Shown here: positions 14,530 to 35,500 of the stretch, piece by piece
How positions within the stretch are numbered: the first letter of the stretch is position 1
Layout of the letters: every line of letters begins with the position of its first letter
From: Oculina patagonica
Lineage: Eukaryota
Assembly (NCBI RefSeq): GCF_052425735.1
Contig: NC_135770.1
Location: 31,248,001 to 31,312,000 of the forward strand
DNA: 64,000 nucleotides
Reading direction: 5' to 3'
Position numbers and translations under genes: made by a program
The notes under the pieces: model-generated
The model's input: the letters and a program-made list of their open reading frames with translations, nothing else
Told to the model about the DNA's origin: nothing
The model's database searches: none

Positions 14530-14902
14530 GACTGTTGTTGTCATAGTTAGTTCTCTTGACTATGTTGTTGTTAAGACCATTTTGTGCATAATCTATTATT
14601 GTTTTTTCCAGCGCGCCCATATACCAAGATCACTACTTCAGATCTTAGAGAAGGATGGAAAAAAGGACGAGAAAAAACCTAAACAGGAAAAACCAGACAA
14701 AGAACAAATAGACCCTGAAGAGGAAGACGACGACTCGACGAAGGACGACAAATCTCCGAAGCGGACACGATCACACACGAGGGAAACACTGAAAGACAAA
14801 CGAAAGTCGCGCAGATCACGCTCTCGCTCCAGGTCACCTCCGCGAAAGAAACGCGAGAAAAGCGCTGGGGAGGAGAGTGCGAGTGAAGGAGAAATAAACT
14901 AA
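252..14902 (+). CDS. SYMPK: Symplekin, 5'-partial (gene starts upstream of window), 23 exons in window
   Basis: GT-AG exons with consistent phases: 252-527, 1017-1124, 2064-2118, 2589-2638, 2877-2915, 3175-3286, 3854-3882, 4314-4371, 5019-5208, 5662-5743, 6049-6231, 6737-6812, 7652-7745, 7924-7993, 8640-8748, 9231-9422, 10135-10236, 11252-11361, 13271-13348, 13445-13492, 13779-13847, 14249-14308, 14612-14902 (stop). Symplekin-like motifs: '[29 protein letters not shown]', 'SWLYQEY', '[17 protein letters not shown]', '[12 protein letters not shown]', '[16 protein letters not shown]'. Confidence 0.95.
2968..3147. repeat. (ACGG)n/(ACGA)n compound microsatellite in SYMPK intron
   Basis: Tetranucleotide tandem repeats directly visible. 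Confidence 0.9.
4408..4594 (-). mobile_element. tRNA-derived SINE, internally deleted copy
   Basis: Minus-strand head 'agcagggatgtcacagtggtgagagcgctc'; homologous to the copy at 36208-36660. Confidence 0.6.
4693..4975. mobile_element. MITE family, further copies at ~3908-4110 and ~15788-16056
   Basis: Inverted ends ttttcacttgagtgtcg / cgacactcaattgaaaa; three related copies in the window. Confidence 0.65.
7314..7540 (+). mobile_element. tRNA-derived SINE, second family (copies at 44730-45015 and a remnant around 12400-13190)
   Basis: B-box GGTTCGAGCC followed by shared body 'cattgcgtcgtgtacttgagcaagacacttaactctcacagt'. Confidence 0.65.
8164..8554. mobile_element. pogo/Tc1-mariner-type MITE
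   Basis: TIRs CCGTATTTATTC..TTAAGCGCCC / GGGCGCTTAATCGAATAAATACGG, TA TSD, internal AATAAGCGCCC subrepeats. Confidence 0.8.
8885..9118. mobile_element. Palindromic MITE remnant
   Basis: Internal inverted repeats ggacacaaa / tttgtgtcc and aaatgtttc / gaaacattt. Confidence 0.5.
10477..11009. mobile_element. Unclassified non-autonomous element: long hairpin + TTCCGAAGAT subrepeats + short hairpin
   Basis: Near-perfect 164-nt palindrome 10477-10640, tandem (T)TCCGAA subrepeats 10675-10830, second hairpin 10910-10955. Degenerate relative at ~26810-27000. Confidence 0.65.
12456..13104. mobile_element. Non-autonomous DNA transposon with 9-bp TSD, inserted into an older SINE
   Basis: TIR TAATCTCGTACCCAGAT / ATCTGGGTACGAGATTA; direct repeat GGTGAGGAC at 12447-12455 and 13105-13113; the flanks rejoin into SINE body sequence. 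Confidence 0.8.
14497..14530. repeat. (TTG)n microsatellite
   Basis: Directly visible. Confidence 0.9.
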
Positions 14903-15629
14903 GTGAACATGGCACTAGTTGGATGTATTCCGCTTGAGCTACCAGGCGACTGCAAAAGCCAGGGTAAAGTTTCACCGCGTATAGTATTCAAAAAGAAACT
15001 TGGCGTGGATACTTCACGTACAGGACAAGAACAAATTCAAAACAAGCCGAGATTTAGTCGAGGCAGTCTTAAAACGGTCCTCAAGAGATGTGTGAGAACC
15101 GATCAGAGAAATTCCATTCTGATGACGTAGCTCTACGCAGATCCGTGTAGCGTCCTCTGATTGGTTGTTGCCCGACTTTGAATTTTCCCGCGCAGGTGAC
15201 AACCAATCGGAAACAAGGAGCTTCGTCATCAGTAGGATCTCAGAGACTTTTCTCCGTGGACTAAATCTAAAGGGGAGACGATTCCTTTCTACCCCGGGAG
15301 GTCTGCCAAGAACGAAAGAATCTTAATTTTTTTTAAAGAAGCTCTGTCAATTGATAACAAAAAAAAACATCAGACTGCACCGAACTGACCAAGCCATAAC
15401 TTGGAAACTGGAGAGAAATACTGGAAATATGCGCGGGTGCCTCCGTTTTTTTATTTTACGCAAAGGCTAAACTGGCTTGATGGGGCATCGCTCGCTATCG
15501 TTGTATATAAGTAATGTGTTTTTTGTAAGTTCCAGCCGAAACATTTTCATTTCTTGTACAGGCTCTCTAGCTTGTAACTGTAAATTATTGGACACTGTCC
15601 TCGTTGTAGGATGTTCAAATATTGAGGCA

Positions 15630-18798: not shown

Positions 18799-21700
18799 TC
18801 ACTTACCATGCTGTTCTTCTTTGCTTTTTCCAACTTCTAACGTGACATCATCACCAATGAGTACAAACGGAGCCCAGTGCTTAACAGAAACAGACTTCTT
18901 TTGCTCTCTAACACATTTCATAGCTCTGTCAACAGCTACACTGGCGCTTTTACCATCTGTCAAATGTTGGTAGAAGCATCTCATGAACTTTATGGTCGCA
19001 TCGGTGTCAAGGTGCCAGAGTGCGACCAGAACGGAACGAGCACCAGCTGCCAGGAAAGCCCGTGCCATGCCAATGACACCATCAGGGGTAATCTCGCCTT
19101 GAGCAGAATGAGAACAGCTTAGCACAACAAGCCTGGCTCGCAGCTGAAGACTTAGCACTTCTGCCAGCGTCAACATGTAGTCTTTCGTCTCAGGGATCAT
19201 GTTCTTCCGTGCGGGATTTGGAGCCAAAACAATTTCACCCGTTTCCGTCTTGACATGGGCTGCAATGTGAATCAAGGCAACGGAACTGATTCGACTCAGT
19301 ACCTCGTCTTTAGCCGCGTCTCTTCCAATAAGCGGTGGGATATCCAGCATTTCACCTATCATCCCAACTTCCTTCCGGGCGTATGGCAAAGGAATATATT
19401 TAGCCTCGCCGGACTTGTAGGTAGCTACCTCCATACATGGATCTCCCACGAGAAGCGCCCCGCTCGTAGAGTGGTATTCTTCAGGACAATTCTTGATCAG
19501 GTATAAACTTGTCAATGAGGGAATGACACGGATCCTGATAGTTTCACTGAGATATCTTGAGGCTTCATTCTTAAAAGCAGCAAAAGGAGCTAACCACAGT
19601 GGACCATCTGGGACAATGATTAATTCTTCACCTTGAAGCTTGTTTGCAATGGGACCAATAACACTATTGAACAAATCATCAAGTGACTTTCCTTTGACGC
19701 GTAACACCTCCATCAAATCTAGATCATTTTTCTCGTAAAGCGTCAACTGACCTTCTTGCAATTGCTCCTCCATCGGACGGCACGAGTTTCTGAGAAGGGC
19801 ATAGATGTCAAGATCTTTGAAAGCTCTTTTCATCAACAAGGCAGGATCTTCGATTTCCTTCCTTTCATAGTGAATTTCTTCTCCCTTGACGAGCCATAAA
19901 TTTATAGTGCCAGTTTCAAGTGCCACAAAGAGTATTGGTGTAGGCAGGCCAGTTAATATGCGAGGAATTGTTTCTTTAGGATCAGACAACTCAGAATGAA
20001 GACATCCAATGTCGTACTGCACCTTAATGAGATCTTTTAATGCCAGTCCACGTCCTTGCTCAGCTACATACAAAGCCTCGTCAGTCTTTCCAAGCTTTGC
20101 CAAAGTTCTCCACAACGCGGTGTACGCTTGTAGACATCTCTTACGAAAGGTTATCTTCCACGCATCCTGGTTTTGAAGGAGAGCTCTCATGTTATTATAC
20201 ACATCCACACTTGATCGATAATAGGGTAGAGCCTCTTCTGTGGAATCCAAGCGTTCATAATCACAGCCTAGAGAATAAAACGCACCACCCTCTCCATTTC
20301 TGTCTCCGACTTCTTTGGCAATACCAAGGGCTTTCTTGTGGTACTCTATCGCTTGCTTGTAATCACCGAGACTGCTGTAGGTATCACCAAGATTTCCATA
20401 GGCACGTCCCTCTTCAGCCTTGTCCCCGATTTCTTTTGCAATGCTTAGGCCTTGCTTGAGGTACTCTTCGGATTCCTCTAAGTTACCTTGAATTCTGCAA
20501 ACGACGCCAATATTTCCACAGCTACGTCCTTCCTCCGCCCTGTCCCCAATTTCTTTGACAATGGCAAGATCTTCCTTATTGTACTTTAGGGCTCGCCTAA
20601 AATCACCGAGGCTGATGTAAGAAAAGCCAAGATTACCATAGGCGCGTCCTTCTTCAGCCTTGTCTCCGATTTCCTTGGAAATGCACAAATCTTCCTTGTG
20701 GCACTCACTGGCTTCTTCAAAATCACCCAGACCTTGGTAAGCAACGCCAAGATTTCCATAGGCGCGTCCTTGTTCAGCCTTGTTTCCGCTTTCCTTGGCA
20801 ATGCTCAAGTCTTGCTGGTGGCACTCAATCGCTTGTTTAAAATCGCCGATACTGCTATATGCAAGGCCTAGATTTCCGTAGGCACGTCCTTCCTCAGACC
20901 TGTCTCCGACTTCTTTGGCAATGGTTAAATCTTGCTTGAGGTACTCGATGGCTTTTTCAAAATCACTAAGACTTCTATAAGCGAGGCCAAGATTCCCATA
21001 GGCACGTCCTTCTTCAGCCCTGTCTTCGACTTCTTTGGCAATGCTTAAATCTTGCTCGTGGTACTCAATGGCTCGTTTAAAATCACCGAGACTGCTGTAT
21101 ACAAGGCCAAGATTTCCATAGGCGCGTCCTTCTTCAGCCCTGTCTCCGACTTCTTTGGCAATGTTTAAATCTTGCGTGTGGTACTCAATGGCTTGTTTAA
21201 AATCACCACGACGACTATAGGTAAGGCCAAAATTTCCATAGGCACGCCCCTCCTCTGCCCTATCTCCGATTTTTTTGGCAATGCTCAAGTGTTCCTTATG
21301 GTACTCAGTAGCCCGTTTAAAATTGCCAAGGCTGCTGTAAGCAAGGCCAAGGTTTCCATAAGCACGGCCCTCTTCAGCCCTATCTCCAATTTTTAGGGCA
21401 ATGCCTAAATCGCGCTTGTGATACACAATGGCTTCTTTAAAATCGCCGAGACTTCTGTAACCCAGGCCAAGATTTCCAAAGGCGCGTCCTTCTTCAGCCC
21501 TGTCCCCGATTTCCCTGGCAATGCTTAGATCTTGATTGTGATACTCAATGGCTTGTTTAAAATCGCCGAGACTGTTATAAGCAAGGCCAAGATTCCCATA
21601 TGCACGTCCTTCTGCAGCCTTGCCACCGACTTCTTTGGCAATGGTTAATTCTTGCTTGTGGTACTCAACGGCTGGTTTAAAATCACCGAGACGTCTAGAG

Positions 21701-22173
21701 GCAAGGCCAAGATTACCATAGGCACGTCCTTCTGCAGCTCTGCCACCGACTTCTTTGGCAATGCTTAATTCTTGCTTGTGGTACTCAAGGGCTTGTTTAA
21801 AATCACCGAGATTGCTGTAAGCGAGGCCAAGATTTCCATAGGCACGTCCTTCCTCTGTCCTGTCGCCGATTTCTATTGCAATGCTAAGATCTTGCTTGTG
21901 GTACTCAATGGCTTGTTTAAAATTGCCGAGACCGCTGTGAGAAAAGCCAAGATTTCCATATGCGCGTCCTTCCTCTGCCCTGTCCCCGAGTTCTTTGGCA
22001 ATGTTTAAGTCTTGCTTGTGGAACTCAATGGCTTGTTTAAAATCACTGAAACTGCTGTAAGCAAGGCCAAGATTTCCATATGCACGTCCTTCTTCAGCTC
22101 TGTCCCCGACTTCTTTAGCCATGCCAAGACGTTTCTCAAGTCTCTCTATAACTTTAGAATTGTTTTCTGACAT
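18799..22173 (-). CDS. TTC28-like TPR-CHAT protein (16 x 40-aa TPR + C-terminal CHAT caspase-like domain, probably catalytically inactive)
   Basis: Uninterrupted 1124-aa ORF; repeated 'GDRAEEGRAYGNLG..Y..LGDFKQAIEYH' units; CHAT motifs 'LIIVPDGPLWLAPFAA', 'LIHIAAH', 'LVVLSCSHS', 'RAFLAAGARSVLVALW', 'HWAPFVLIG'. A splice acceptor lies 55 nt upstream of the ATG (exon edge 22228). Confidence 0.93.
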   Translation of the reverse strand: MSENNSKVIERLEKRLGMAKEVGDRAEEGRAYGNLGLAYSSFSDFKQAIEFHKQDLNIAKELGDRAEEGRAYGNLGFSHSGLGNFKQAIEYHKQDLSIAIEIGDRTEEGRAYGNLGLAYSNLGDFKQALEYHKQELSIAKEVGGRAAEGRAYGNLGLASRRLGDFKPAVEYHKQELTIAKEVGGKAAEGRAYGNLGLAYNSLGDFKQAIEYHNQDLSIAREIGDRAEEGRAFGNLGLGYRSLGDFKEAIVYHKRDLGIALKIGDRAEEGRAYGNLGLAYSSLGNFKRATEYHKEHLSIAKKIGDRAEEGRAYGNFGLTYSRRGDFKQAIEYHTQDLNIAKEVGDRAEEGRAYGNLGLVYSSLGDFKRAIEYHEQDLSIAKEVEDRAEEGRAYGNLGLAYRSLSDFEKAIEYLKQDLTIAKEVGDRSEEGRAYGNLGLAYSSIGDFKQAIECHQQDLSIAKESGNKAEQGRAYGNLGVAYQGLGDFEEASECHKEDLCISKEIGDKAEEGRAYGNLGFSYISLGDFRRALKYNKEDLAIVKEIGDRAEEGRSCGNIGVVCRIQGNLEESEEYLKQGLSIAKEIGDKAEEGRAYGNLGDTYSSLGDYKQAIEYHKKALGIAKEVGDRNGEGGAFYSLGCDYERLDSTEEALPYYRSSVDVYNNMRALLQNQDAWKITFRKRCLQAYTALWRTLAKLGKTDEALYVAEQGRGLALKDLIKVQYDIGCLHSELSDPKETIPRILTGLPTPILFVALETGTINLWLVKGEEIHYERKEIEDPALLMKRAFKDLDIYALLRNSCRPMEEQLQEGQLTLYEKNDLDLMEVLRVKGKSLDDLFNSVIGPIANKLQGEELIIVPDGPLWLAPFAAFKNEASRYLSETIRIRVIPSLTSLYLIKNCPEEYHSTSGALLVGDPCMEVATYKSGEAKYIPLPYARKEVGMIGEMLDIPPLIGRDAAKDEVLSRISSVALIHIAAHVKTETGEIVLAPNPARKNMIPETKDYMLTLAEVLSLQLRARLVVLSCSHSAQGEITPDGVIGMARAFLAAGARSVLVALWHLDTDATIKFMRCFYQHLTDGKSASVAVDRAMKCVREQKKSVSVKHWAPFVLIGDDVTLEVGKSKEEQHGK

Positions 22174-25954: not shown

Positions 25955-28285
25955 CTATCAACATGAAAAAACAATCCCATTAATCATCATGCTTGCCAAT
26001 AAAAAACAGCGTTAAGATGAGCAAGAAATTATAGTTTGAATGTGAGAGAAAGGCCCCGAAACAATACTTACGTAGCCAAAAGATGATCAGCAAAGATTTC
26101 AAGGAAAATTGTATCCAACTGCAGTGGCAGGCGAACAACTCAAAACATAACCAACGACAAGTGGCGTCGAGGTATGGCAACTTGTCTTGTTTTATAACAT
26201 CAGATATTAGCACTTTAATTTCAGTTTCTATGCAGACTATCAAATGATTGGGATTCAGATTTTCACTTTTCAAATGCAACTGTTTTCTTTTAGTTTATTT
26301 CGGTCCTCGTGCAACATTTTGGATTTAGATTTTCATTTTCCTCCAGTCATACATTTTAGATTTGGGAGATTTCAGTTTTTGGCGTGGCAGAGAGAAATGT
26401 CGAGTTCCGTCTTAGCCAAAATTTTGTCGAGTTCCGTCGTAGACAAAATATTTTGACATAATCAATCCAAATTTAAAAAAAGAGACTTGCGTATTTATGA
26501 TATACCGGAGAACTCCCGACCGAAAAAGTCGTGTGTGGGGTAATATTTCAAATAAAGTTATTAAAATGTCGTTCCTTTCGAAAATGAAAGTTCAGAGTTT
26601 ACGAGATGTCAAAATTTAGTCATGTAAAATTAGAAGGTTAGCTGAAATTAGAGAAATTTTCAAATGCACAATGAACCACAAGAAAGTGTATCTAAATTCT
26701 AAAACCGAACGGCAACAGACTGAAATAAAGACCGGAAGCCGAATTGTCGTCGTCATGGGGAACTGAAAGAAAAAATTAAAGTGGGGTTGTCATTCTTCAA
26801 ACTTGCTAGAAAATGAAATTCTTTCGTATTTCCAAGCTACCATGTATTTTAAGGCTTCTTGGGCAATTTTTCCGAAAATTGTCGACAATTCCCCGACGAT
26901 TGCCGATGAAGATCCGAGGATGCTTCTCCGAAATGTACAGGGAATCGCCTTTAAAAATGTCACGATATTTTTTAAGTCGATCACTTTTCTTATGTACAAA
27001 ATCACTGTCAAATTGAAAGAAACCCTAAAGAATAAAGTTTAAAAACACCACAGAAGTGACCGAAAATAAACAAAGATTGTTAGTGTCTGAGGAAGATTGA
27101 AGACTTGAAAAAAATTGGCCAATTTCCCAAGATGCAGCGACTGAGACGTTGCCGTATGAAGAGAAATCAAATGACCTGCGAAACTGATGTCAAACATGTT
27201 TGGGCTTGCGATTAGCAGACGTGCACACAACAGGAAATTGAAAATTTCCTTGAAGGGAAACACCTGAAGATTCCCTCTGTACTGCGCTTGGCTTTTTGCC
27301 GAACAGAGGGTTTTTTTCACTATTTAAATTTTACTTGACGGATTGCTACTAGACTAGATCAGTTCATCAAAACTCGATCGAACAGTCAGGCTTAGATAAC
27401 GTAGGCTTGATCGATCGAGTCAGCCGGGTGAAATCCGTCATATTTCTTCTTTCAATTCTCATTTTTTTCATTCTTTGTGTTGTATAATTTTCCCCAATTT
27501 TTCTGTAATGTTCTGATTGCGTTTAATTTACACTTTCGCTGTGGTCGCTATAATTGTTAAACTTGAAAACTTGTGATTATTTTGGGCCAGTTGCGGAATT
27601 TTATAGCAATAAGCACATGACTAATCCACCGAAATTTTATCGGACTTCGAATATTTATCCTGACTACAAGAGAACAGCTTGATGAAAATACAAAACACTT
27701 TCAATTTACGAAACCGCAGAGCAACAGTGTATAGAATGCAATTACGCACATCATTCGATTTCAGGATATACACGGTCATTATAATTAATAACAAGTCTGT
27801 TATCTTGACGTATTTACGGGTGAGTGGGTCATGTAAAAATATCTTCACCGGGACTTGTTCCTTCATGCAAGGTTTTATCACGTTCGATATTTTTATTTTG
27901 CTTTTATAATGACAAACACTCTAAACTGTACAGGCAAGCTGTTAATCGCGTGGGAAATGTAAAATACCTTTTGATTAAAAAGGATCAGTCTTATTAACAA
28001 GCATTAACAAATTAAGTGAAATTGAACAATGTCGCCTCTTTAATAGTTAGTTATTTCTGGCATTCGTGACACTAGGCGAGGTCCAAAATACATTCCTCGA
28101 GGCACCTTTCAAAGCCAATCGCATCTCGCGTGCATTGTTTCGCGTAATGGATTACTGAATTAGGACATAGACTGTTTATATCCGGTCTTATCACGTATTT
28201 ATACACTGTACTTAGGTCAAGATTTGTTCTATTTCCCTTGAGATTAACGAGTCGCTTTTGATTTTTCTCGCGCGCTTTGAAAAGC

Positions 28286-29158
28286 ATGAGGTTTACAACC
28301 AAAGTGTCTTCGCAAGAGACTAGAATCTCCAAATCGGGGGCAGCTGATGAGAAGTTTACGTTCACTGTTAAGAAGTCGGAGGTGGCAAATGGATCGAGCG
28401 CTGTGCGCTCCGAGAGCGAAGGCGCTAGCGGTGGAACACAGAAATCAAGCACACTAAACGTAAATCGCGAACAAATTGAAGATTTCGCAAGTGTCCGCGG
28501 CAAAATCTTTCCCGTCATCAAAGCGCGTTCTTGGGTCGACGCCACGAAAGATCTGCTCACGAAAATTGATCCTAAATGCAAAGCGGGTGTCTTATTCACG
28601 CCTCTGAAGAACATTCCCGGAGCTAGCATCGGGTACACGCTAGCTATCCTAGGCGATCACGCCGATTCCCTCAACTACATTTTAACGAGCCATTTGGATG
28701 CTTGGAGCATCTCGGAGAGCGCCCTGCAAGAGGTCGCGCTGAGAAATTTGGAGAAGAAGCTGGACGATTTAGGAGAAGATCTTTGGGCGCAGAGCAAGAC
28801 TGGTATTTACTACATCGACAGTTTGGGGTCGATCTGCGCATCTGTTATCTTGTTGCCGCGTTTTATTGCGCAGTTGGACGTGGAAAGCGGGGACGCTGTA
28901 ATAGTCCTTCCTTCGAGTGACCTGTGTATGGTTGTAGGCTCTAAAATGGAGACACGACTTTGCATCGTTGGGGAAATGTCTTTGCGTTATTCATCCGATC
29001 CGCACCACTTGAACACAAGCCTTCGTCTCAACAAGGCCAGAATGGTGATTGCAAATTACTCGCCGAAATCTTTCGCCGGTGAATTCCCCGTTCCCTCTAC
29101 CCTAGAAGAAGTTGCTGGACTTAAACTAAGGGTACAGCCCATCAAAAGAAAGAAATAA
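28286..29158 (+). CDS. Intronless 290-aa protein with DUF1444/YtpQ-like domain
   Basis: First ATG at 28286. Motif succession 'IFPVIKARSW', 'LNYILTSHLDAWSISESALQEVALRNL', 'GIYYIDSLGSICASVILLP', 'DAVIVLPSSDLCMVVGS' parallels bacterial DUF1444 proteins as recalled. The ORF is secure; the domain call is unverified. Confidence 0.75.
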   Translation: MRFTTKVSSQETRISKSGAADEKFTFTVKKSEVANGSSAVRSESEGASGGTQKSSTLNVNREQIEDFASVRGKIFPVIKARSWVDATKDLLTKIDPKCKAGVLFTPLKNIPGASIGYTLAILGDHADSLNYILTSHLDAWSISESALQEVALRNLEKKLDDLGEDLWAQSKTGIYYIDSLGSICASVILLPRFIAQLDVESGDAVIVLPSSDLCMVVGSKMETRLCIVGEMSLRYSSDPHHLNTSLRLNKARMVIANYSPKSFAGEFPVPSTLEEVAGLKLRVQPIKRKK

Positions 29159-30060
29159 CTTTGCTACTTTTGTAGGATTTTAGTTTATTTGATGATAAAC
29201 ATTTTTGAAAAGAACAAAAGGCCAAACAAAGAGCATTGAGGAGGGTCGGATAATATTTTTGGATTTAGAACTCGTGTTGTGTCACGCATCACGCATTCTT
29301 TTACAAACTTGTATAGTTTTCAAAGAGAGAATACGAATTAGCGTAAGTTTAGTTGGTAAAATCGAACATATACTTTTCGTGTAGCACTAGTATAAAACTT
29401 TAAATTAATAGAAAATAAAACAAGTTTTATTAATTGTTCCTTAATTGAATAGGACATCAAGCGTGACAAAGTACACCTCAAAAACCTCAAATTTAATTAA
29501 TTCGCCGTAATCGCTTTGTAAATAGTCTCGGCAGCCTGCTGAGTCAAGAGACGATTTTTTGTATAATAAGTTTATAAAGAATAAATATTGCCCTAGGGAT
29601 ATCATTCGCAATTGAGTCTATTTTTGTCCGTTTGATTAGTCGGGTCAATATACCGTAATGATTCAATTTAGCGCTGGAGCCGAGGAGAGAGAGAGAGGGG
29701 GCCCCCTTTAGGGGGGGGACTATTTCTGACTATACTAGTCGACATGAACATTGCTATGTGATAAAACAATGAACAACAACAGATACTGTAACTCATGATC
29801 AGTTACAATACGGTTCCACATAGTCATAAGCAACCATTCTTTTGTTCAATTCGTTCAATATAACTTTCATATGAGATAAAAGGGTACATAATTCACTCGT
29901 CCTAATCAGTTTATTGAATGTCACTTTCACAGTACTAGGGCGCCTGTTGAAATTGGAGTGCTTAATTTAAAAACAACACTCAAGGGAGATTGACAAAAAG
30001 GAGGCGCTGTACTGGAAGAAGGGCTCTAAAACGAATCATCATGATACGCCAGGACACATA

Positions 30061-30413
30061 CCGTAGAATTCCGGTTATAAGCCCTGGGCTTATACAACTT
30101 CATAAGGGTCAGTCTTTGGGTAATGGGTGGGCTTATAAGTGGAGGGGCTTATATCCGGGAGGGCTTATAAACGGAATAAAAAAAACGTTCCGAAACGGGC
30201 CACGGGAGTGTCGATCGAAATACGTTTTTAAGATAAAAACGCATAATAAAGCAACATTTAGCCCTGTTCAGTACTGTCATCCGGCAGAGGGGGGCTTATA
30301 TCCGGGGGGGGGGGCTTACAATCGGATGTATTTTTTTGTTTCCAGGTAGATGAGCCTATAACCGGGGGGGGGGGGGGGTTGAGGGGGGGGGGCTTATAAC
30401 CGGAATTTTACGG
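30061..30413. mobile_element. pogo/Tc1-mariner-type MITE
   Basis: TIRs CCGTAGAATTCCGGTTATAAGCCC / GGGCTTATAACCGGAATTTTACGG, TA TSD, GGGCTTATA subrepeats. Confidence 0.8.
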
Positions 30414-31924
30414 TATGACACGACAGCTTTTAGTAGTTACACAGATTGAAGTGAGAGGTGGCCCTATATGAATATCAGGGCTTCTTGTAAAGGAAATGAC
30501 CGACCGATTTGTTTTTGTGACCAAAAGAAAATGGTCAGGTGGTCTAGTCCAGTCTTACATAGCCTGTTCCAAGAGTTCGGTTAGTTGGTGAGCAGCGGGA
30601 AAAACGGGATGAGCACGAAGAACGGCGACTGGCAAAATGGCGAGGAACTGGCCAAGTTTAATTTACGGAATTCTACTTCCGACCGAAAAACGAAAGTTGA
30701 AGATCTATTTAACAAGTAGTGTACATTCCAAGCGCTTATTGGTTCAGTCTACCGCGTAGTCCCTATTTTTTCTCACGGTTACAAGGATAATTTGTAGTCT
30801 GTTATTGATTTAATTTCAATGTGTTTTGTGCAGCAAGCTCGGAAGGCCCTCGAGACGGAGCACAATAAAGGGGCTAAGACTCTTGGAGCTGCATCTGCTC
30901 GGCATAACGATAAGTGTTTAATTCGGTTCTTTCGAGTTCTTCCCCTGAATATTGATCGTGTGGGGCGGACGTACTTACAGAAAAAGCTTTAGAGTGGAGG
31001 GGGACAGGGGGGCGGGAGCCCGGGAGAAAAGGGGGGGAAGGGGAGGAGAGAGGGCGGGAACCGGAAGAAAGCGAGTGAAATCGAACATTCTATATTTCGC
31101 AATGGACATGGAACAAATGGAGAGAACAGTACGGAAAGGGGGGGTGGCGGGAGTAAAAGGTACGGGAAGCGGGAGAAAAGGTACGGAGGTGGGAGGTTCA
31201 GACACCCCTGTCCCTCCCTCTTTAGAGATATGCTTCCCCTTAGAGCCAGATTTCATATCTTTTTTACGGTCAAATGTTTGGGTTCAAAGATTTTACCCTT
31301 TTTGGTTTGAAATAGGGTATGCATTTTACATGTCAAGGAAACTTCAATACATTTGTACCATCGTGTAAATGACACTAATAGAAGGCTAGTGTAAATGGCA
31401 CAACGTTCGCACAAAGGACTACAAGGAGAGTTAACTGTCGCGGAATCGTTTATTTGTTCAAAAAATGACACTTGAACATTTCACTTCGACAAAATTTCCT
31501 CCAGCAACCTTATACCTAATCACAGTCAATTCCAAATTTCAACAGCTACAGCTCCTCCCAGCTCCCCTCCCCTTGGGATCCAAATTAGTTTTACAGTCCC
31601 CTTCTATGGCCTAATGTAATATACCCTAGGTATGATACCCGTGAGGGGAGGGGAAGGGAGAATTGGGAAGTGATCAAAACATACACTTACAGAATCACTA
31701 CAACATAGTGCTTTGTTTGTAACAGTAACAATTCTATCGTACAGGTGATTTGTTAAGTGTGATTTCATCTCCGTCTTATTCTTCTGTATCTAATGGTAGT
31801 TTTATTCTGATTCACAAAATATACTATCTTAAAGACGCATTTCTCTGAAAGAAATGAATTTAATTCGGATTTTATTGCTCTCTTTGATGAATGGTCTTTT
31901 ACGTAACTCATCTCATACTTTTAA

Positions 31925-32213
31925 AAGGACTATGTCACGGCACGAGGATTTCGCAGATTTCTGTTCTAAACTGTTTCTCTCCTTAAACTGTTCTAAAATA
32001 AGTGGTAGGCATCTTTTAACCCAGAAACATTATCTTGAACTTACTGAAGATATAACCTTTTGGGGTGAGAATACTTCGTTAAATGTATTTTTTAAGGTGC
32101 ACGGAAGGGTCTCTAAAATAGCAATTGTAATAAAAATAGACAATTATTTTCAAGTTTTCCGAACAATTATTTTGGCTGTTCAAAAATCTGTTAAAATCCG
32201 TGACATAGTCCCT
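31925..32213. mobile_element. TTAA-targeting MITE (Kolobok-like); relatives at ~3420-3800 and ~9490-9855
   Basis: TIR AAGGACTATGTCACGG / CCGTGACATAGTCCCT flanked by TTAA on both sides. Confidence 0.7.
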
Positions 32214-32563
32214 TTAAAACAGTAATATAGTTTCGACTACTTCCCAAAGACATTCTGCGGAATTGGCACTACATGTAATCACGTGAGCTTGACGTCATAC
32301 CAATACGTCATGTTACTAGGCAACTGCTGTCACAAAGACTGTAGGCTCAATCCATTCTCGCAGATAGTGTGTTACTAATTGATGTAAATTTAAGAGATAT
32401 AACGTGTATTACCAAAACTTATAAAAAAAATTCATTTATCTTGCATTACTTTGATGTTTGTTGAAAACTATCACAGTTTTAATGACGGTATGTCTTTATA
32501 ATATTGCATGAATTTTTATCACTACAAAACGAAACTGTTAGAGTCTTGCTAACTAATGTCTCT

Positions 32564-35500
32564 CTACAATTCCTTTAGCTGCCCTATTGTTGTTTTCAGG
32601 AGGTTCACGTGAGCCTGGAACAAACAAAATGAACAAGTCAATAAACTTCAAAACCATCTGAAGTCAGATTTTACTGGGAAATGAGGATCAGGCAACAGTT
32701 TTTACAAAGCTGTGCTCTTAGAATAATAATAATTACAGGGTGCCCAAATGCTCTTTTGTAAGAAATCATGGGTGCCCAGCTCATACAAGCTTTTATGATA
32801 ACAAAATTATACACGTCGCCCAAAGATAAAAGTAGGTCGCCTGTGGCACCCGGGCTCTGCTGGAGCTCTGCTAGAGCACAGCTCTGAACTACATTGCCAA
32901 ATTCACACGCCCCGCTATTAGTGAGATGGACAATTTGTTTCAGGTCACGTGGGGCACTTAAAAAGCAAGCCTACTGGGTAAATGCTGAGCAATTCAGTGA
33001 TGCAAGGGAATCATTTGACTCATAACCCAGTGCAAGTCATCATCATCGCCAGCATGATAGAAACAAGCTCATTATCAATGATACAAGGGTCTCTTATACA
33101 TGCTAGTACTAAATGGTTGGTACGGATAAAACAAAACAACAAACTTGACCAAGAAACATGCTCTCTGGGTATGTACAATTTAAAAGCCTTGAACTTTCAT
33201 TTGTCAAGCTACAGCCTTTAATGGGTTAATTATTGTAAACTAAATGACTACTTCGTTTTCTATGGCATTAAGCAAATAGAAGCACAGCCCCCCCCCCCCC
33301 CGACTGGGATAGATGCTGCTCCATCATGATAAACTCCAGAGCATTTTATCAGGTTACCCACCAAACATTGGCTGTTTCCATGTCATACATTCGGGTATAC
33401 ATACATGTAGCAAGACATGGCGAGAAAGAGTTTCCATGCAATGCACTCTGCCATTTGTAATAAAAAAAATGCAACACATGCAATAAATAATTTATTTAAC
33501 AGTACCTTAGCGTGTTTCAGCTCTAATTCTGCTCGTTCAGTCTGAAAAATAAAAGTATTTTTATAAGAATATTTCCAAAGCCGAAAACATTGATGCTAAT
33601 GTGTTGTTCCAGAAAATAATTATCCATACCCCTCCCATGGAAGGTTTTTGATTTGAATCCCCCCACCCTTTGAAAATCCCAGTTAGGCCCCATACTTTCC
33701 TTTAAAAATTTTGGCCTTTGAGACCCCACACTTCCTCAGTTTCCATGACCTTCCATGGGGTGGGTATGGATATTTTCTTAAACTGCACAATACACAAAGT
33801 CTTTTTGCCTCTTCACTCACAAAATGAATGTCATTTCAGTTTTACTCACCATGCTCTTTCTAAACTGTTGAACTCTTCTTGTCTTGAAGTCTGTCAGTTC
33901 TGTTGATAAAAAAGCAGTTCACAAATTAATCTTGCATTTAGCATTTCATGGCTGCAATAGGCCCTTTCCAAGCTGCTGTTAGGCACTGTTTTTAAACAAG
34001 TCCTTGTGCAAAACCTTTAAACCTTTTAATGTGAAAATGAGTTTGATTTGAATAAACATACAGAAAAAACTCCTTTTGATCCAATATATTCATGATACTT
34101 CTCAGTTCTTACTGACCTTGTTTAGCTACTTCTGAAATGTGTTCGAATTTTTCAGAAGCTGTTTGCTGAGCTGTCTCCGCCTGAAGCAAAAAAAAAAAAA
34201 AAAAAAAAACGACCATGAATCATAATAAAAGCACACAGTAGGCTGCTTTCAGCTTTGATTTAAAGTGNNNNNNNNNNNNNNNNNNNNNNNNNNNNNNNNN
34301 NNNNNNNNNNNNNNNNNNNNNNNNNNNNNNNNNNNNNNNNNNNNNNNNNNNNNNNNNNNNNNNNNNNNNNNNNNNNNNNNNNNNNNNNNNNNNNNNNNNN
34401 NNNNNNNNNNNTATTAACATGCAGTATTAATTAAAATATAAAGAAAAATAGGTGATAGATCAGGATTAATTATGTCTGATTTCAGTTACTTTAAAATGAC
34501 CCTACAAATCAAATCAAATATATTAAATATTTTTTTAAAAAATTTCTATAGGAGTGTGCAACAAAGTTATGTCTAATCACCCCAAAAAAGTGATTCTCTT
34601 TTCAGTATTAAGCTCATTGCCCAACAAGGCTGTCGTACATGCCATTTTATGATGAAGTTGTCGTTTGGTCATTTTCAAACTTGAATTGCTGGTCATAATT
34701 ATTCACTCAGACTTTTTTCCCCGTCCTAGGCTCGTAACAACAAAAAATACTTCTTTCGCATTTTAGTTATGGCAATGTTGTTGATCACATTTAGCCTGTT
34801 GTCAGCTACTAATGACAACTCTCAGTTTATTGTGTAAGGCGGCCCAAAGAGGAAGTCCTCCATTTTCTCTGCATGCTGTTCAATCATCTTTCACTTTCCA
34901 GACAACACACCACTTGAAACAGTTTCCAACTCAGGGCTGTCAATATTTTAGGGCAGTAACCTATAACACATTTCAGGGTCCCCTATACCTCTCTGCGAAA
35001 TGGAATCACATAAAAATATTTGGCTTTTTTACGCATCACAAATTATTCTAAAAATGTTTTCACGTTCATGCAAAAATCATGGCGATTCGTGTTAAGACTG
35101 TTATGCTCTGAAGGTGTAAGACCAGATATTGTGCCTGTCAAGATCACACATGCGACGAAATAGCGGACAAAAGTCCCAATCCCAACCACAAAGCTTAAAC
35201 AAAGATGTGCGTTTAACTCATCGTTCATGTTTAAGCTAAAAATTGCGTTCACATGCACGTAAAAAGATCTTAAAATTTGGAATCACGAATCATGAAAAAA
35301 TAAAAGCCCAAATCACGTTTTACGGCAAATTAGTAGGCTCAATCACGCTTCACGTAAAAAGTATAGGGGACCCTGACCTATGGCTAAGTTTACTTAATGT
35401 TACGGGTTTAGATGTTGATTGGTCTTACATTACACTTGCAGAGCAAGATGTTATGGATGATAACTTCCATGTAACAGCTCTTATGCAGTACTAATAAGAT

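Follow-up and report, generated by a model that had tools for sequence, protein, structure and literature searches.

Gene Structure

The 64,000-nucleotide stretch of the stony coral Oculina patagonica analysed here (contig NC_135770.1, hereafter the window) carries, at positions 28286–29158, a single-exon gene for a 290-residue protein that is distantly homologous to the bacterial DUF1444 family (UPF0354; YtpQ or CgoN). A preliminary description, made from the sequence of the window, had pointed to this gene as a candidate for horizontal gene transfer (HGT). The observation of an intronless DUF1444-like coral gene is confirmed by the present analysis, and the transfer interpretation is partly supported. 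The gene and its parts are the following.

28277 to 29158, plus strand: open frame, with an in-frame stop 9 codons 5' of the ATG
28286 to 29158, plus strand: single-exon coding sequence (CDS) of 290 amino acids and stop; first ATG at 28286, with A at -3
28286 to 28453, plus strand: N-terminal extension (residues 1–56), rich in Ser, Gly and Thr, predicted to be disordered, in place of the N-terminal domain of bacterial YtpQ
28469 to 29065, plus strand: DUF1444/UPF0354-like core (residues 62–260), matching YtpQ's central and C-terminal domains in hhalign and Foldseek
29102 to 29155, plus strand: cnidarian-specific C-terminal helix and basic tail (KRKK; residues 273–290), the helix modelled at 273–282
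27929 to 28100, plus strand: putative promoter region, a block conserved in blastn upstream of the earliest contig start
28101 to 28285, plus strand: approximate 5' untranslated region (UTR), from the starts of transcript-like contigs
29159 to 29604, plus strand: 3' UTR, as judged from the contig ends, with AATAAA polyadenylation signals at 29414 and 29580

The open reading frame (ORF) is intact from ATG to stop and crosses no contig joints. The Ser/Gly-rich N-terminus and the terminal PIKRKK described earlier are both seen in the translation, and the gene is present in one copy in the 529-Mb genome. Its GC content is 49%, with 54% at third codon positions (GC3) and a CpG observed/expected ratio of 1.16. 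These GC and GC3 values are close to those of other CDS of the window (symplekin exon, 45% and 50%; linker histone H1, 53% and 58%), the DNA flanking the ORF having 31–36% GC, and the composition bears no foreign-DNA signature. Since the sole run of Ns in the window (34268–34411) lies 3' of the gene, before the exons of a sorting nexin, the gene is contiguous with the symplekin (SYMPK) exons upstream. The ORF is a true gene of the stony-coral nuclear genome.

Homology to DUF1444 Proteins

The best Pfam match of the protein is DUF1444 (PF07285; E 4.2e-4, 20.4 bits), in which residues 67–239 align with positions 80–236 of the hidden Markov model (HMM), a score under the curated cut-off, and the match to NCBIfam PRK13668 (E 1.3e-4) is of the same kind. 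Five of nine coral orthologues match PF07285 at E<=1, none better than the query protein, and the more distant cnidarian homologues give no match to it. An exhaustive search with phmmer, covering 1.84 billion representatives, yielded 43 hits, among which members of the cnidarian family reach down to E 1e-12 and bacterial or metagenomic proteins appear from E 3.6e-7 on. The matches to Pfam-confirmed DUF1444 proteins lie between E 4e-7 and 8e-4, and most of the bacterial and metagenomic matches tested are themselves above the Pfam cut-off for DUF1444 (E 1e-10 to 1e-17). One hit, P0058, is a repeat protein with MBG repeats and a spurious match.

The relationship is much clearer between profiles. 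When a 14-sequence cnidarian profile was aligned by hhalign with a 12-sequence bacterial DUF1444 profile, a probability of 99.6% and an E-value of 3.2e-24 over 178 columns were obtained, the first 99 columns of the bacterial profile being unmatched. The cnidarian and bacterial alignments have ten conserved columns in common, namely P76 and K79 (P-x-x-K), A151, N154 and L155 (A-x-x-N-L), G173, S186 and L189 (with L190, S-x-x-L-L) and V205 and P209 (V-x-x-x-P), and it is on these positions that the motifs previously likened to DUF1444 fall. The Arg of the bacterial P-x-R-D motif, which is 96% conserved in bacteria, is absent from 22 of 22 cnidarian-type sequences (Ser in 77%), and an Asp that is 87% conserved in bacterial DUF1444 is variable in them. 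Other residues (W83, W140, E144, C226, G229 and P270) are invariant in the cnidarian proteins only.

The AlphaFold2 model of the protein has a mean predicted local distance difference test (pLDDT) score of 73.8 and a predicted template modelling (pTM) score of 0.72. The pLDDT is mostly 75–95 for residues 57–290 and below 50 for residues 1–56, the part that is modelled as disordered. In Foldseek, which here compares predicted with predicted structures, the top 30 matches in the Swiss-Prot section of the AlphaFold Database (AFDB) are all UPF0354 proteins (E 1e-8 to 2e-7, TM score ~0.5, ~205 residues aligned), so that the structural check proposed in the preliminary description came out in its favour. 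Among them, B. subtilis YtpQ matches at E 2e-8, with coral residues 62–259 on ~77–257. Many matches among the AFDB clusters are named DUF1444 family proteins, and every named neighbour in the ESM Atlas is bacterial, some of them in DUF1444 or DUF5688 clusters. Foldseek against the PDB gave nothing at E<=0.001, and the VIA search over all structure representatives reached a best Z of 3.3; the fold is without a solved homologue.

The N-terminal domain of YtpQ has no counterpart in the coral protein, since the matches begin at HMM position ~80 and YtpQ residue ~77. In Priestia YtpQ this domain comprises residues 1–78, and all three domains together are proposed to make up the ligand site (PMC10965808), the N-terminal lobe presumably closing the ligand cleft. 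Its position is taken by the disordered stretch in corals and by only ~25–30 residues in medusozoan homologues. At the other end of the protein, conservation among corals extends to EVAGLKLRV and the basic tail, and most of the distant homologues have a basic tail as well (corals, KRKK; putative hydrozoan clade, KRSLKR, KRTRK and KRSRK). The DUF1444 resemblance is a real, distant homology.

Synteny and Integration in the Animal Chromosome

The gene stands between two animal genes, as listed below.

7915 to 15579, plus strand: symplekin exons, upstream neighbour; Pfam Symplekin_C on the ORF fragment 8867–9490, exons matching those of orthologous loci L017 and L016 in order
32212 to 42433, minus strand: sorting-nexin-type gene with PX and Vps5 domains, downstream neighbour; exons matching L012/L013 and L017 in order

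Symplekin is multi-exon, its exons being conserved piecewise against other corals in blastn, which agrees with the intron-rich animal neighbours noted before. The PX and Vps5 domains are carried by the annotated sorting-nexin gene of L012, a Pocillopora locus. The order symplekin, DUF1444-like gene, sorting nexin is kept in L017, L016 and Pocillopora L012/L013 (blastn against the window), in which the protein is 87% (L017), 80% (L012/L013) and 65% (L016) identical to that of the window. The same flanking pair is thus found in at least four independent coral assemblies. Contamination and a recent insertion are excluded because synteny is kept in independent assemblies, and the earlier statements that no gap separates the gene from SYMPK and that contamination is unlikely hold good. 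The block conserved with L017 spans 27929–29600 and ends at the distal polyadenylation site, and the block conserved with Pocillopora L012/L013 begins at 27967. The whole block (27929–29600) comprises the putative promoter, both UTRs and the gene.

The Symplekin_C domain adjoins the homologue in L001, L016 and L017. In L001, a Tara metagenome scaffold, the homologue P0033 (37% identical) lies at 5592–6410 and a Symplekin_C exon at 10008–10304, ~3.6 kb off, with symplekin downstream of the homologue and on the opposite strand. The linkage to symplekin is old, and its orientation is altered in L001.

Between symplekin and the DUF1444-like gene, the window contains ~12 kb of DNA (15.6–27.9 kb) that L017 and L016 lack at that place. 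An intronless 1124-residue ORF (18799–22173, minus strand) with ~15 TPR repeats and, at its C-terminus, a CHAT domain (Pfam E 2e-150 and 2e-51) sits inside this DNA. The ORF has the look of an insertion specific to the lineage, or of a member of an expanded family that has moved here.

Transcription and Purifying Selection

Sequencing runs containing the stretch were sought. Four of them, probably of RNA and coming from four studies under three organism labels, had their contigs aligned to 26500–31500. Contigs start at 28101, 28172, 28195 and 28201 and end at 29274, 29341, 29435, 29604 and 29738, cover around the gene being confined to ~28101–29740 in all four runs, and no internal joints occur across the gene. 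In the same runs the flanks 27000–28100 and 29840–30006 have practically no contig cover, with none in 27836–28002. The ends at 29435/29443 and 29604 fall 16–24 nt past the AATAAA hexamers at 29414 and 29580, which are the only two in the 3' flank. This shape fits an unspliced, alternatively polyadenylated mRNA, the runs being only presumed to be RNA. A scan for sigma-70 promoters and terminators gave matches no commoner than in shuffled sequence.

Selection was estimated by the ratio of nonsynonymous to synonymous substitutions (dN/dS; Nei-Gojobori) on codon alignments with seven orthologous loci. The unsaturated pair of window and L017 (dS 0.63) gives a dN/dS of 0.10, and closer pairs give 0.13–0.20. 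By region, the disordered N-terminus has 0.17–0.18 versus 0.08–0.09 for the folded core. The gene is under purifying selection with a dN/dS of ~0.1, so that both the synteny and the dN/dS checks that had been proposed turned out positive.

Distribution across Cnidaria

Word-based searches returned 30 clusters of 65–99% identity, and orthologues labelled "uncharacterized protein" at NCBI come from Pocillopora verrucosa, Montipora foliosa, M. capricornis and four Acropora species. A scyphozoan homologue is found in the predicted proteins of Rhopilema esculentum (EukProt EP00795). Beyond Scleractinia, homologues are 24–52% identical and occur as single complete ORFs on gene-sparse, eukaryote-like contigs, among genes for TIM, Med18, hAT and DDE transposases and zf-CCCH proteins. 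Every homologue copy whose DNA was at hand is a single complete, intronless ORF. In the word-based searches and in the search with the medusozoan-type profile A4, which returned unlabelled proteins only, no orthologue of a sea anemone (such as Nematostella), Hydra or another hydrozoan is named, a negative that does not amount to loss.

A maximum likelihood (ML) tree (LG+C20, unrooted) was computed in which the bacterial rows are the best hits of the query itself; P0058 and the short fragments P0034, P0036, P0038, P0042, P0044–46, P0051 and P0070 were left out. The family falls into two groups. One consists of Scleractinia, P0031/P0032 and the symplekin-linked P0033, and the other of two subclades, the first with Rhopilema and the second with P0039. 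The latter protein is present in ~200 blocks of Tara Pacific coral metagenomes and, by elimination among the Tara Pacific hosts, probably belongs to the hydrozoan Millepora. As far as sequence comparison goes, the two groups look like the anthozoan/medusozoan split, with apparent vertical inheritance since then. The gene is neither recently captured nor specific to corals, and it predates that split.

In L003/L004/L005 (3137–3889), a putative hydrozoan homologue adjoins a seemingly intronless 250-residue triosephosphate isomerase ORF and a Med18-like fragment, a neighbourhood unlike the anthozoan one.

Origin of the Gene

Outside the cnidarian family, all recognisable sequence relatives are bacterial or metagenomic. 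The closest are P0047 (metagenomic) and P0048, each ~30% identical over ~200 residues (phmmer E ~4e-7). P0048 is encoded in an uncultured Planctomycetaceae metagenome-assembled genome among densely packed bacterial genes, and a search of genome contigs for the locus of P0047 found none. These non-Bacillota proteins keep the N-terminal region and the Arg, unlike the cnidarian ones, from which a long branch divides them, and some of their kind carry a fused SEC-C or Sel1 module or a long extension at the C-terminus. In the ML tree, cnidarians and bacteria are split with support of 100/99, the cnidarian side being joined by one long branch to a three-way bacterial polytomy. If the root lies anywhere in the bacterial part, the cnidarian clade derives from within bacterial diversity.

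Because the other sequence relatives are bacterial or metagenomic and all copies are intronless, one transfer from a bacterium to an animal before the cnidarian radiation appears, judged from the sequences, to be the most economical origin, and on balance we favour it. A bacterial DUF1444 gene would have entered the cnidarian stem once, diverged fast, and then been inherited vertically across Cnidaria, from Scleractinia to Scyphozoa, under purifying selection. From its own promoter, the coral gene would give an unspliced, polyadenylated mRNA of ~1.2–1.5 kb, and the product would be a soluble 290-residue protein made of a disordered head, a two-domain core of the DUF1444/UPF0354 (YtpQ/CgoN) superfamily and a helix with a basic tail. 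The overall explanation that we regard as the best, and as probable, is a transcribed coral gene of a truncated DUF1444 branch, with an ancient single transfer as its presumed origin and a function other than that of CgoN.

Several points weigh against this explanation. The Pfam score of 20.4 bits is under the gathering cut-off for DUF1444 (23.8 bits), so that the profile comparison suggested in the preliminary description succeeded with hhalign but not with Pfam. A six-frame search of the coral's own genome with PF07285 finds nothing at E<=0.01; the same search in 14 control genomes gave a match in Bacillus subtilis only. The tree is unrooted, with query-biased bacterial rows, and does not show nesting within bacteria. 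With a best bacterial identity of ~30%, the donor lineage is not identifiable. Most of the distant homologues lack a taxon label and are assigned to Cnidaria by tree position, sample type and synteny. The sequencing runs are stored as contigs and are only guessed to be RNA, which limits the proposed RNA-seq check to transcript-shaped contigs in four runs. Finally, the three best AFDB-cluster matches are two MYND-type domain proteins and a nameless 572-residue protein (E 2e-9 to 5e-8). MYND fingers are typical of eukaryotes, and the accessions are presumably those of a streptophyte alga and of a dinoflagellate (MYND-linked AFDB entries A0A1Y1HM70, A0A1Y1I727 and A0A813LZX2). These matches are probably eukaryotic, and an old eukaryotic DUF1444-like lineage is thereby conceivable.

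Vertical descent from such an ancient eukaryotic gene, with survival in Cnidaria and in a few lineages of protists or algae and loss almost everywhere else, is the most serious alternative. These structural matches speak for it, as do the position of the cnidarians in the tree, which is not inside any sampled bacterial subgroup, and the great age and fully host-like composition of the gene. It would, however, need many independent losses across eukaryotes, and the cnidarian copies are all intronless beside intron-rich neighbours. Moreover, no non-cnidarian eukaryote was recognised among the 43 phmmer hits or in the word-based searches, most hits being without taxon. The non-family hits that were Pfam-scanned and scored are all DUF1444 except the spurious P0058; six that were scanned without a Pfam match look bacterial by composition, and a few were unscanned. 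Vertical descent is rated as rather unlikely, clearly less probable than a single ancient transfer but still a live alternative. That the resemblance to DUF1444 is due to chance or convergence, the family being a cnidarian invention, would suit the sub-threshold Pfam match and the lack of a solved structure with the same fold, but it is very improbable in view of the profile-profile alignment, the single family that fills the top Swiss-Prot structural matches, the retrieval of Pfam-genuine DUF1444 proteins by the coral query and the invariant motif columns common to both groups. Bacterial contamination or a recent lineage-specific insertion, which would agree with an intronless gene and with bacterial nearest non-cnidarian relatives, has practically no probability left beside the shared animal flanks, the ungapped SYMPK side, the eukaryotic polyadenylation signals at contig ends, the chance level of bacterial promoter and terminator matches, the low identity to bacteria and the orthologues across Scleractinia and in a scyphozoan.

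The preliminary description had gone as far as a domesticated bacterial gene. Of this idea, the homology, the intronless and integrated state and the bacterial or metagenomic character of the non-cnidarian sequence relatives have stood; its weak points are the tree, which does not show nesting within bacteria, and the donor lineage, which is not identifiable.

Possible Function

The view of DUF1444 as a family of unknown function, from which the preliminary description set out, no longer holds in full. The ytpQ gene of B. subtilis was first tied to iron homeostasis (PMC3176815), and Priestia megaterium YtpQ was then reported as CgoN, a monomeric, flavin adenine dinucleotide (FAD)-dependent and oxygen-independent oxidase that acts in vitro on coproporphyrinogen III with FAD and menadione, its turnover being low at 0.63 per min (PMC10965808). 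In S. aureus, the DUF1444 protein adds at most minimally to haem synthesis (PMC6620371).

The coral protein might still be a flavin-dependent, oxygen-independent porphyrinogen oxidase of the YtpQ/CgoN type, adding a tetrapyrrole step in cnidarians. The activity of the Priestia enzyme, the retained central and C-terminal fold with its ten motif positions and the strong purifying selection would be in keeping with this. However, the N-terminal domain, the proposed partner in the ligand site, is absent in all cnidarian members, the P-x-R-D Arg is replaced in all 22 sequences and the conserved Asp is variable, and animals run the protoporphyrin-dependent and not the coproporphyrin-dependent pathway (PMC10965808). 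The small haem contribution in S. aureus also speaks against it, as does the fact that CgoN orthologues are essentially limited to Bacillaceae and are not the nearest bacterial relatives, which belong to the wider DUF1444-like proteins with fusions to SEC-C, Sel1 or TPR modules. For a protein that has neither the N-terminal lobe nor the conserved Arg, in animals that depend on the protoporphyrin pathway, CgoN-type catalysis is unlikely, and we give it little credence.

A function other than that of CgoN can be sketched only tentatively. The two-domain core may still bind a flavin- or tetrapyrrole-like small molecule or act as a scaffold, in the cytosol or possibly in part in the nucleus, a suggestion that we hold with rather low confidence and that is drawn from the sequence and its predicted fold. 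The basic C-terminal tail would fit a monopartite nuclear localisation signal, and it is on this tail that the possible nuclear role of the preliminary description would depend. In its full form the proposal is a stem-cnidarian acquisition of DUF1444, more than half a billion years old, in which the N-terminal lobe was lost, a disordered head and a basic nuclear-targeting tail were gained, and a new cnidarian-specific function arose, such as the sensing or handling of tetrapyrroles or flavins in the nucleus or cytosol; so specific a sequence of events is possible but rather doubtful.

A link to defence systems was considered and rejected. PADLOC gave no match for the coral protein or for the DUF1444 part of its relatives, its only matches being to the SEC-C region of P0052.

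Comparison with Known Systems

The coral protein shares with the DUF1444/UPF0354 proteins YtpQ and CgoN the common motifs and the central and C-terminal fold. Unlike these, it is the product of an animal nuclear gene that has eukaryotic mRNA signals, is without the N-terminal domain, has Ser for the P-x-R-D Arg, and adds the disordered N-terminus, the C-terminal helix, the basic tail and invariant residues of its own. The DUF1444/YtpQ superfamily is hereby extended to animals in a truncated two-domain form. For a family without a solved structure, whose biochemical role, as CgoN or otherwise, is debated, this form offers a naturally truncated case for telling apart what each part of the fold is needed for. 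For coral biology, it brings to notice a conserved and apparently expressed gene that annotations call only "uncharacterized protein".

The gene resembles the 41 HGT candidates described in corals (Bhattacharya et al., 2016; PMC4878875) in its prokaryotic affinity, its position beside animal genes and its presence in many cnidarians, but differs from them in being older (crown Cnidaria) and far more diverged. Owing to this far greater divergence, BLAST-based HGT screens would probably miss it. DUF1444 has no entry in the list of that study, in which a few "predicted" or "hypothetical" protein entries are unresolvable, and a literature search found, within the library covered, no paper tying DUF1444, YtpQ or CgoN to cnidarians. 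If the proposed origin is true, the gene is among the oldest bacterial genes retained in an animal phylum, not described before, and its retention would be phylum-wide since before the anthozoan/medusozoan split. A bacterial gene that escapes Pfam and BLAST-type screens would also mean that such screens undercount ancient transfers.

Other Features of the Window

A dispersed repeat lies 3' of the gene at 30007–30510, with a summed contig depth of 4,000–53,000 in the four runs and many joints and loose ends, and a similar repeat is found upstream of the orthologue in L017 (681–808). A 119-residue ORF (29990–30349) overlaps the repeat of the window and is probably meaningless. The segments 44717–45016 and 7314–7441 both match L017 4366–4653 with 73–78% identity, one of them reversed, and are probably another dispersed repeat. 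A linker histone H1 ORF is located at 60161–60721 (Pfam E 2e-30).

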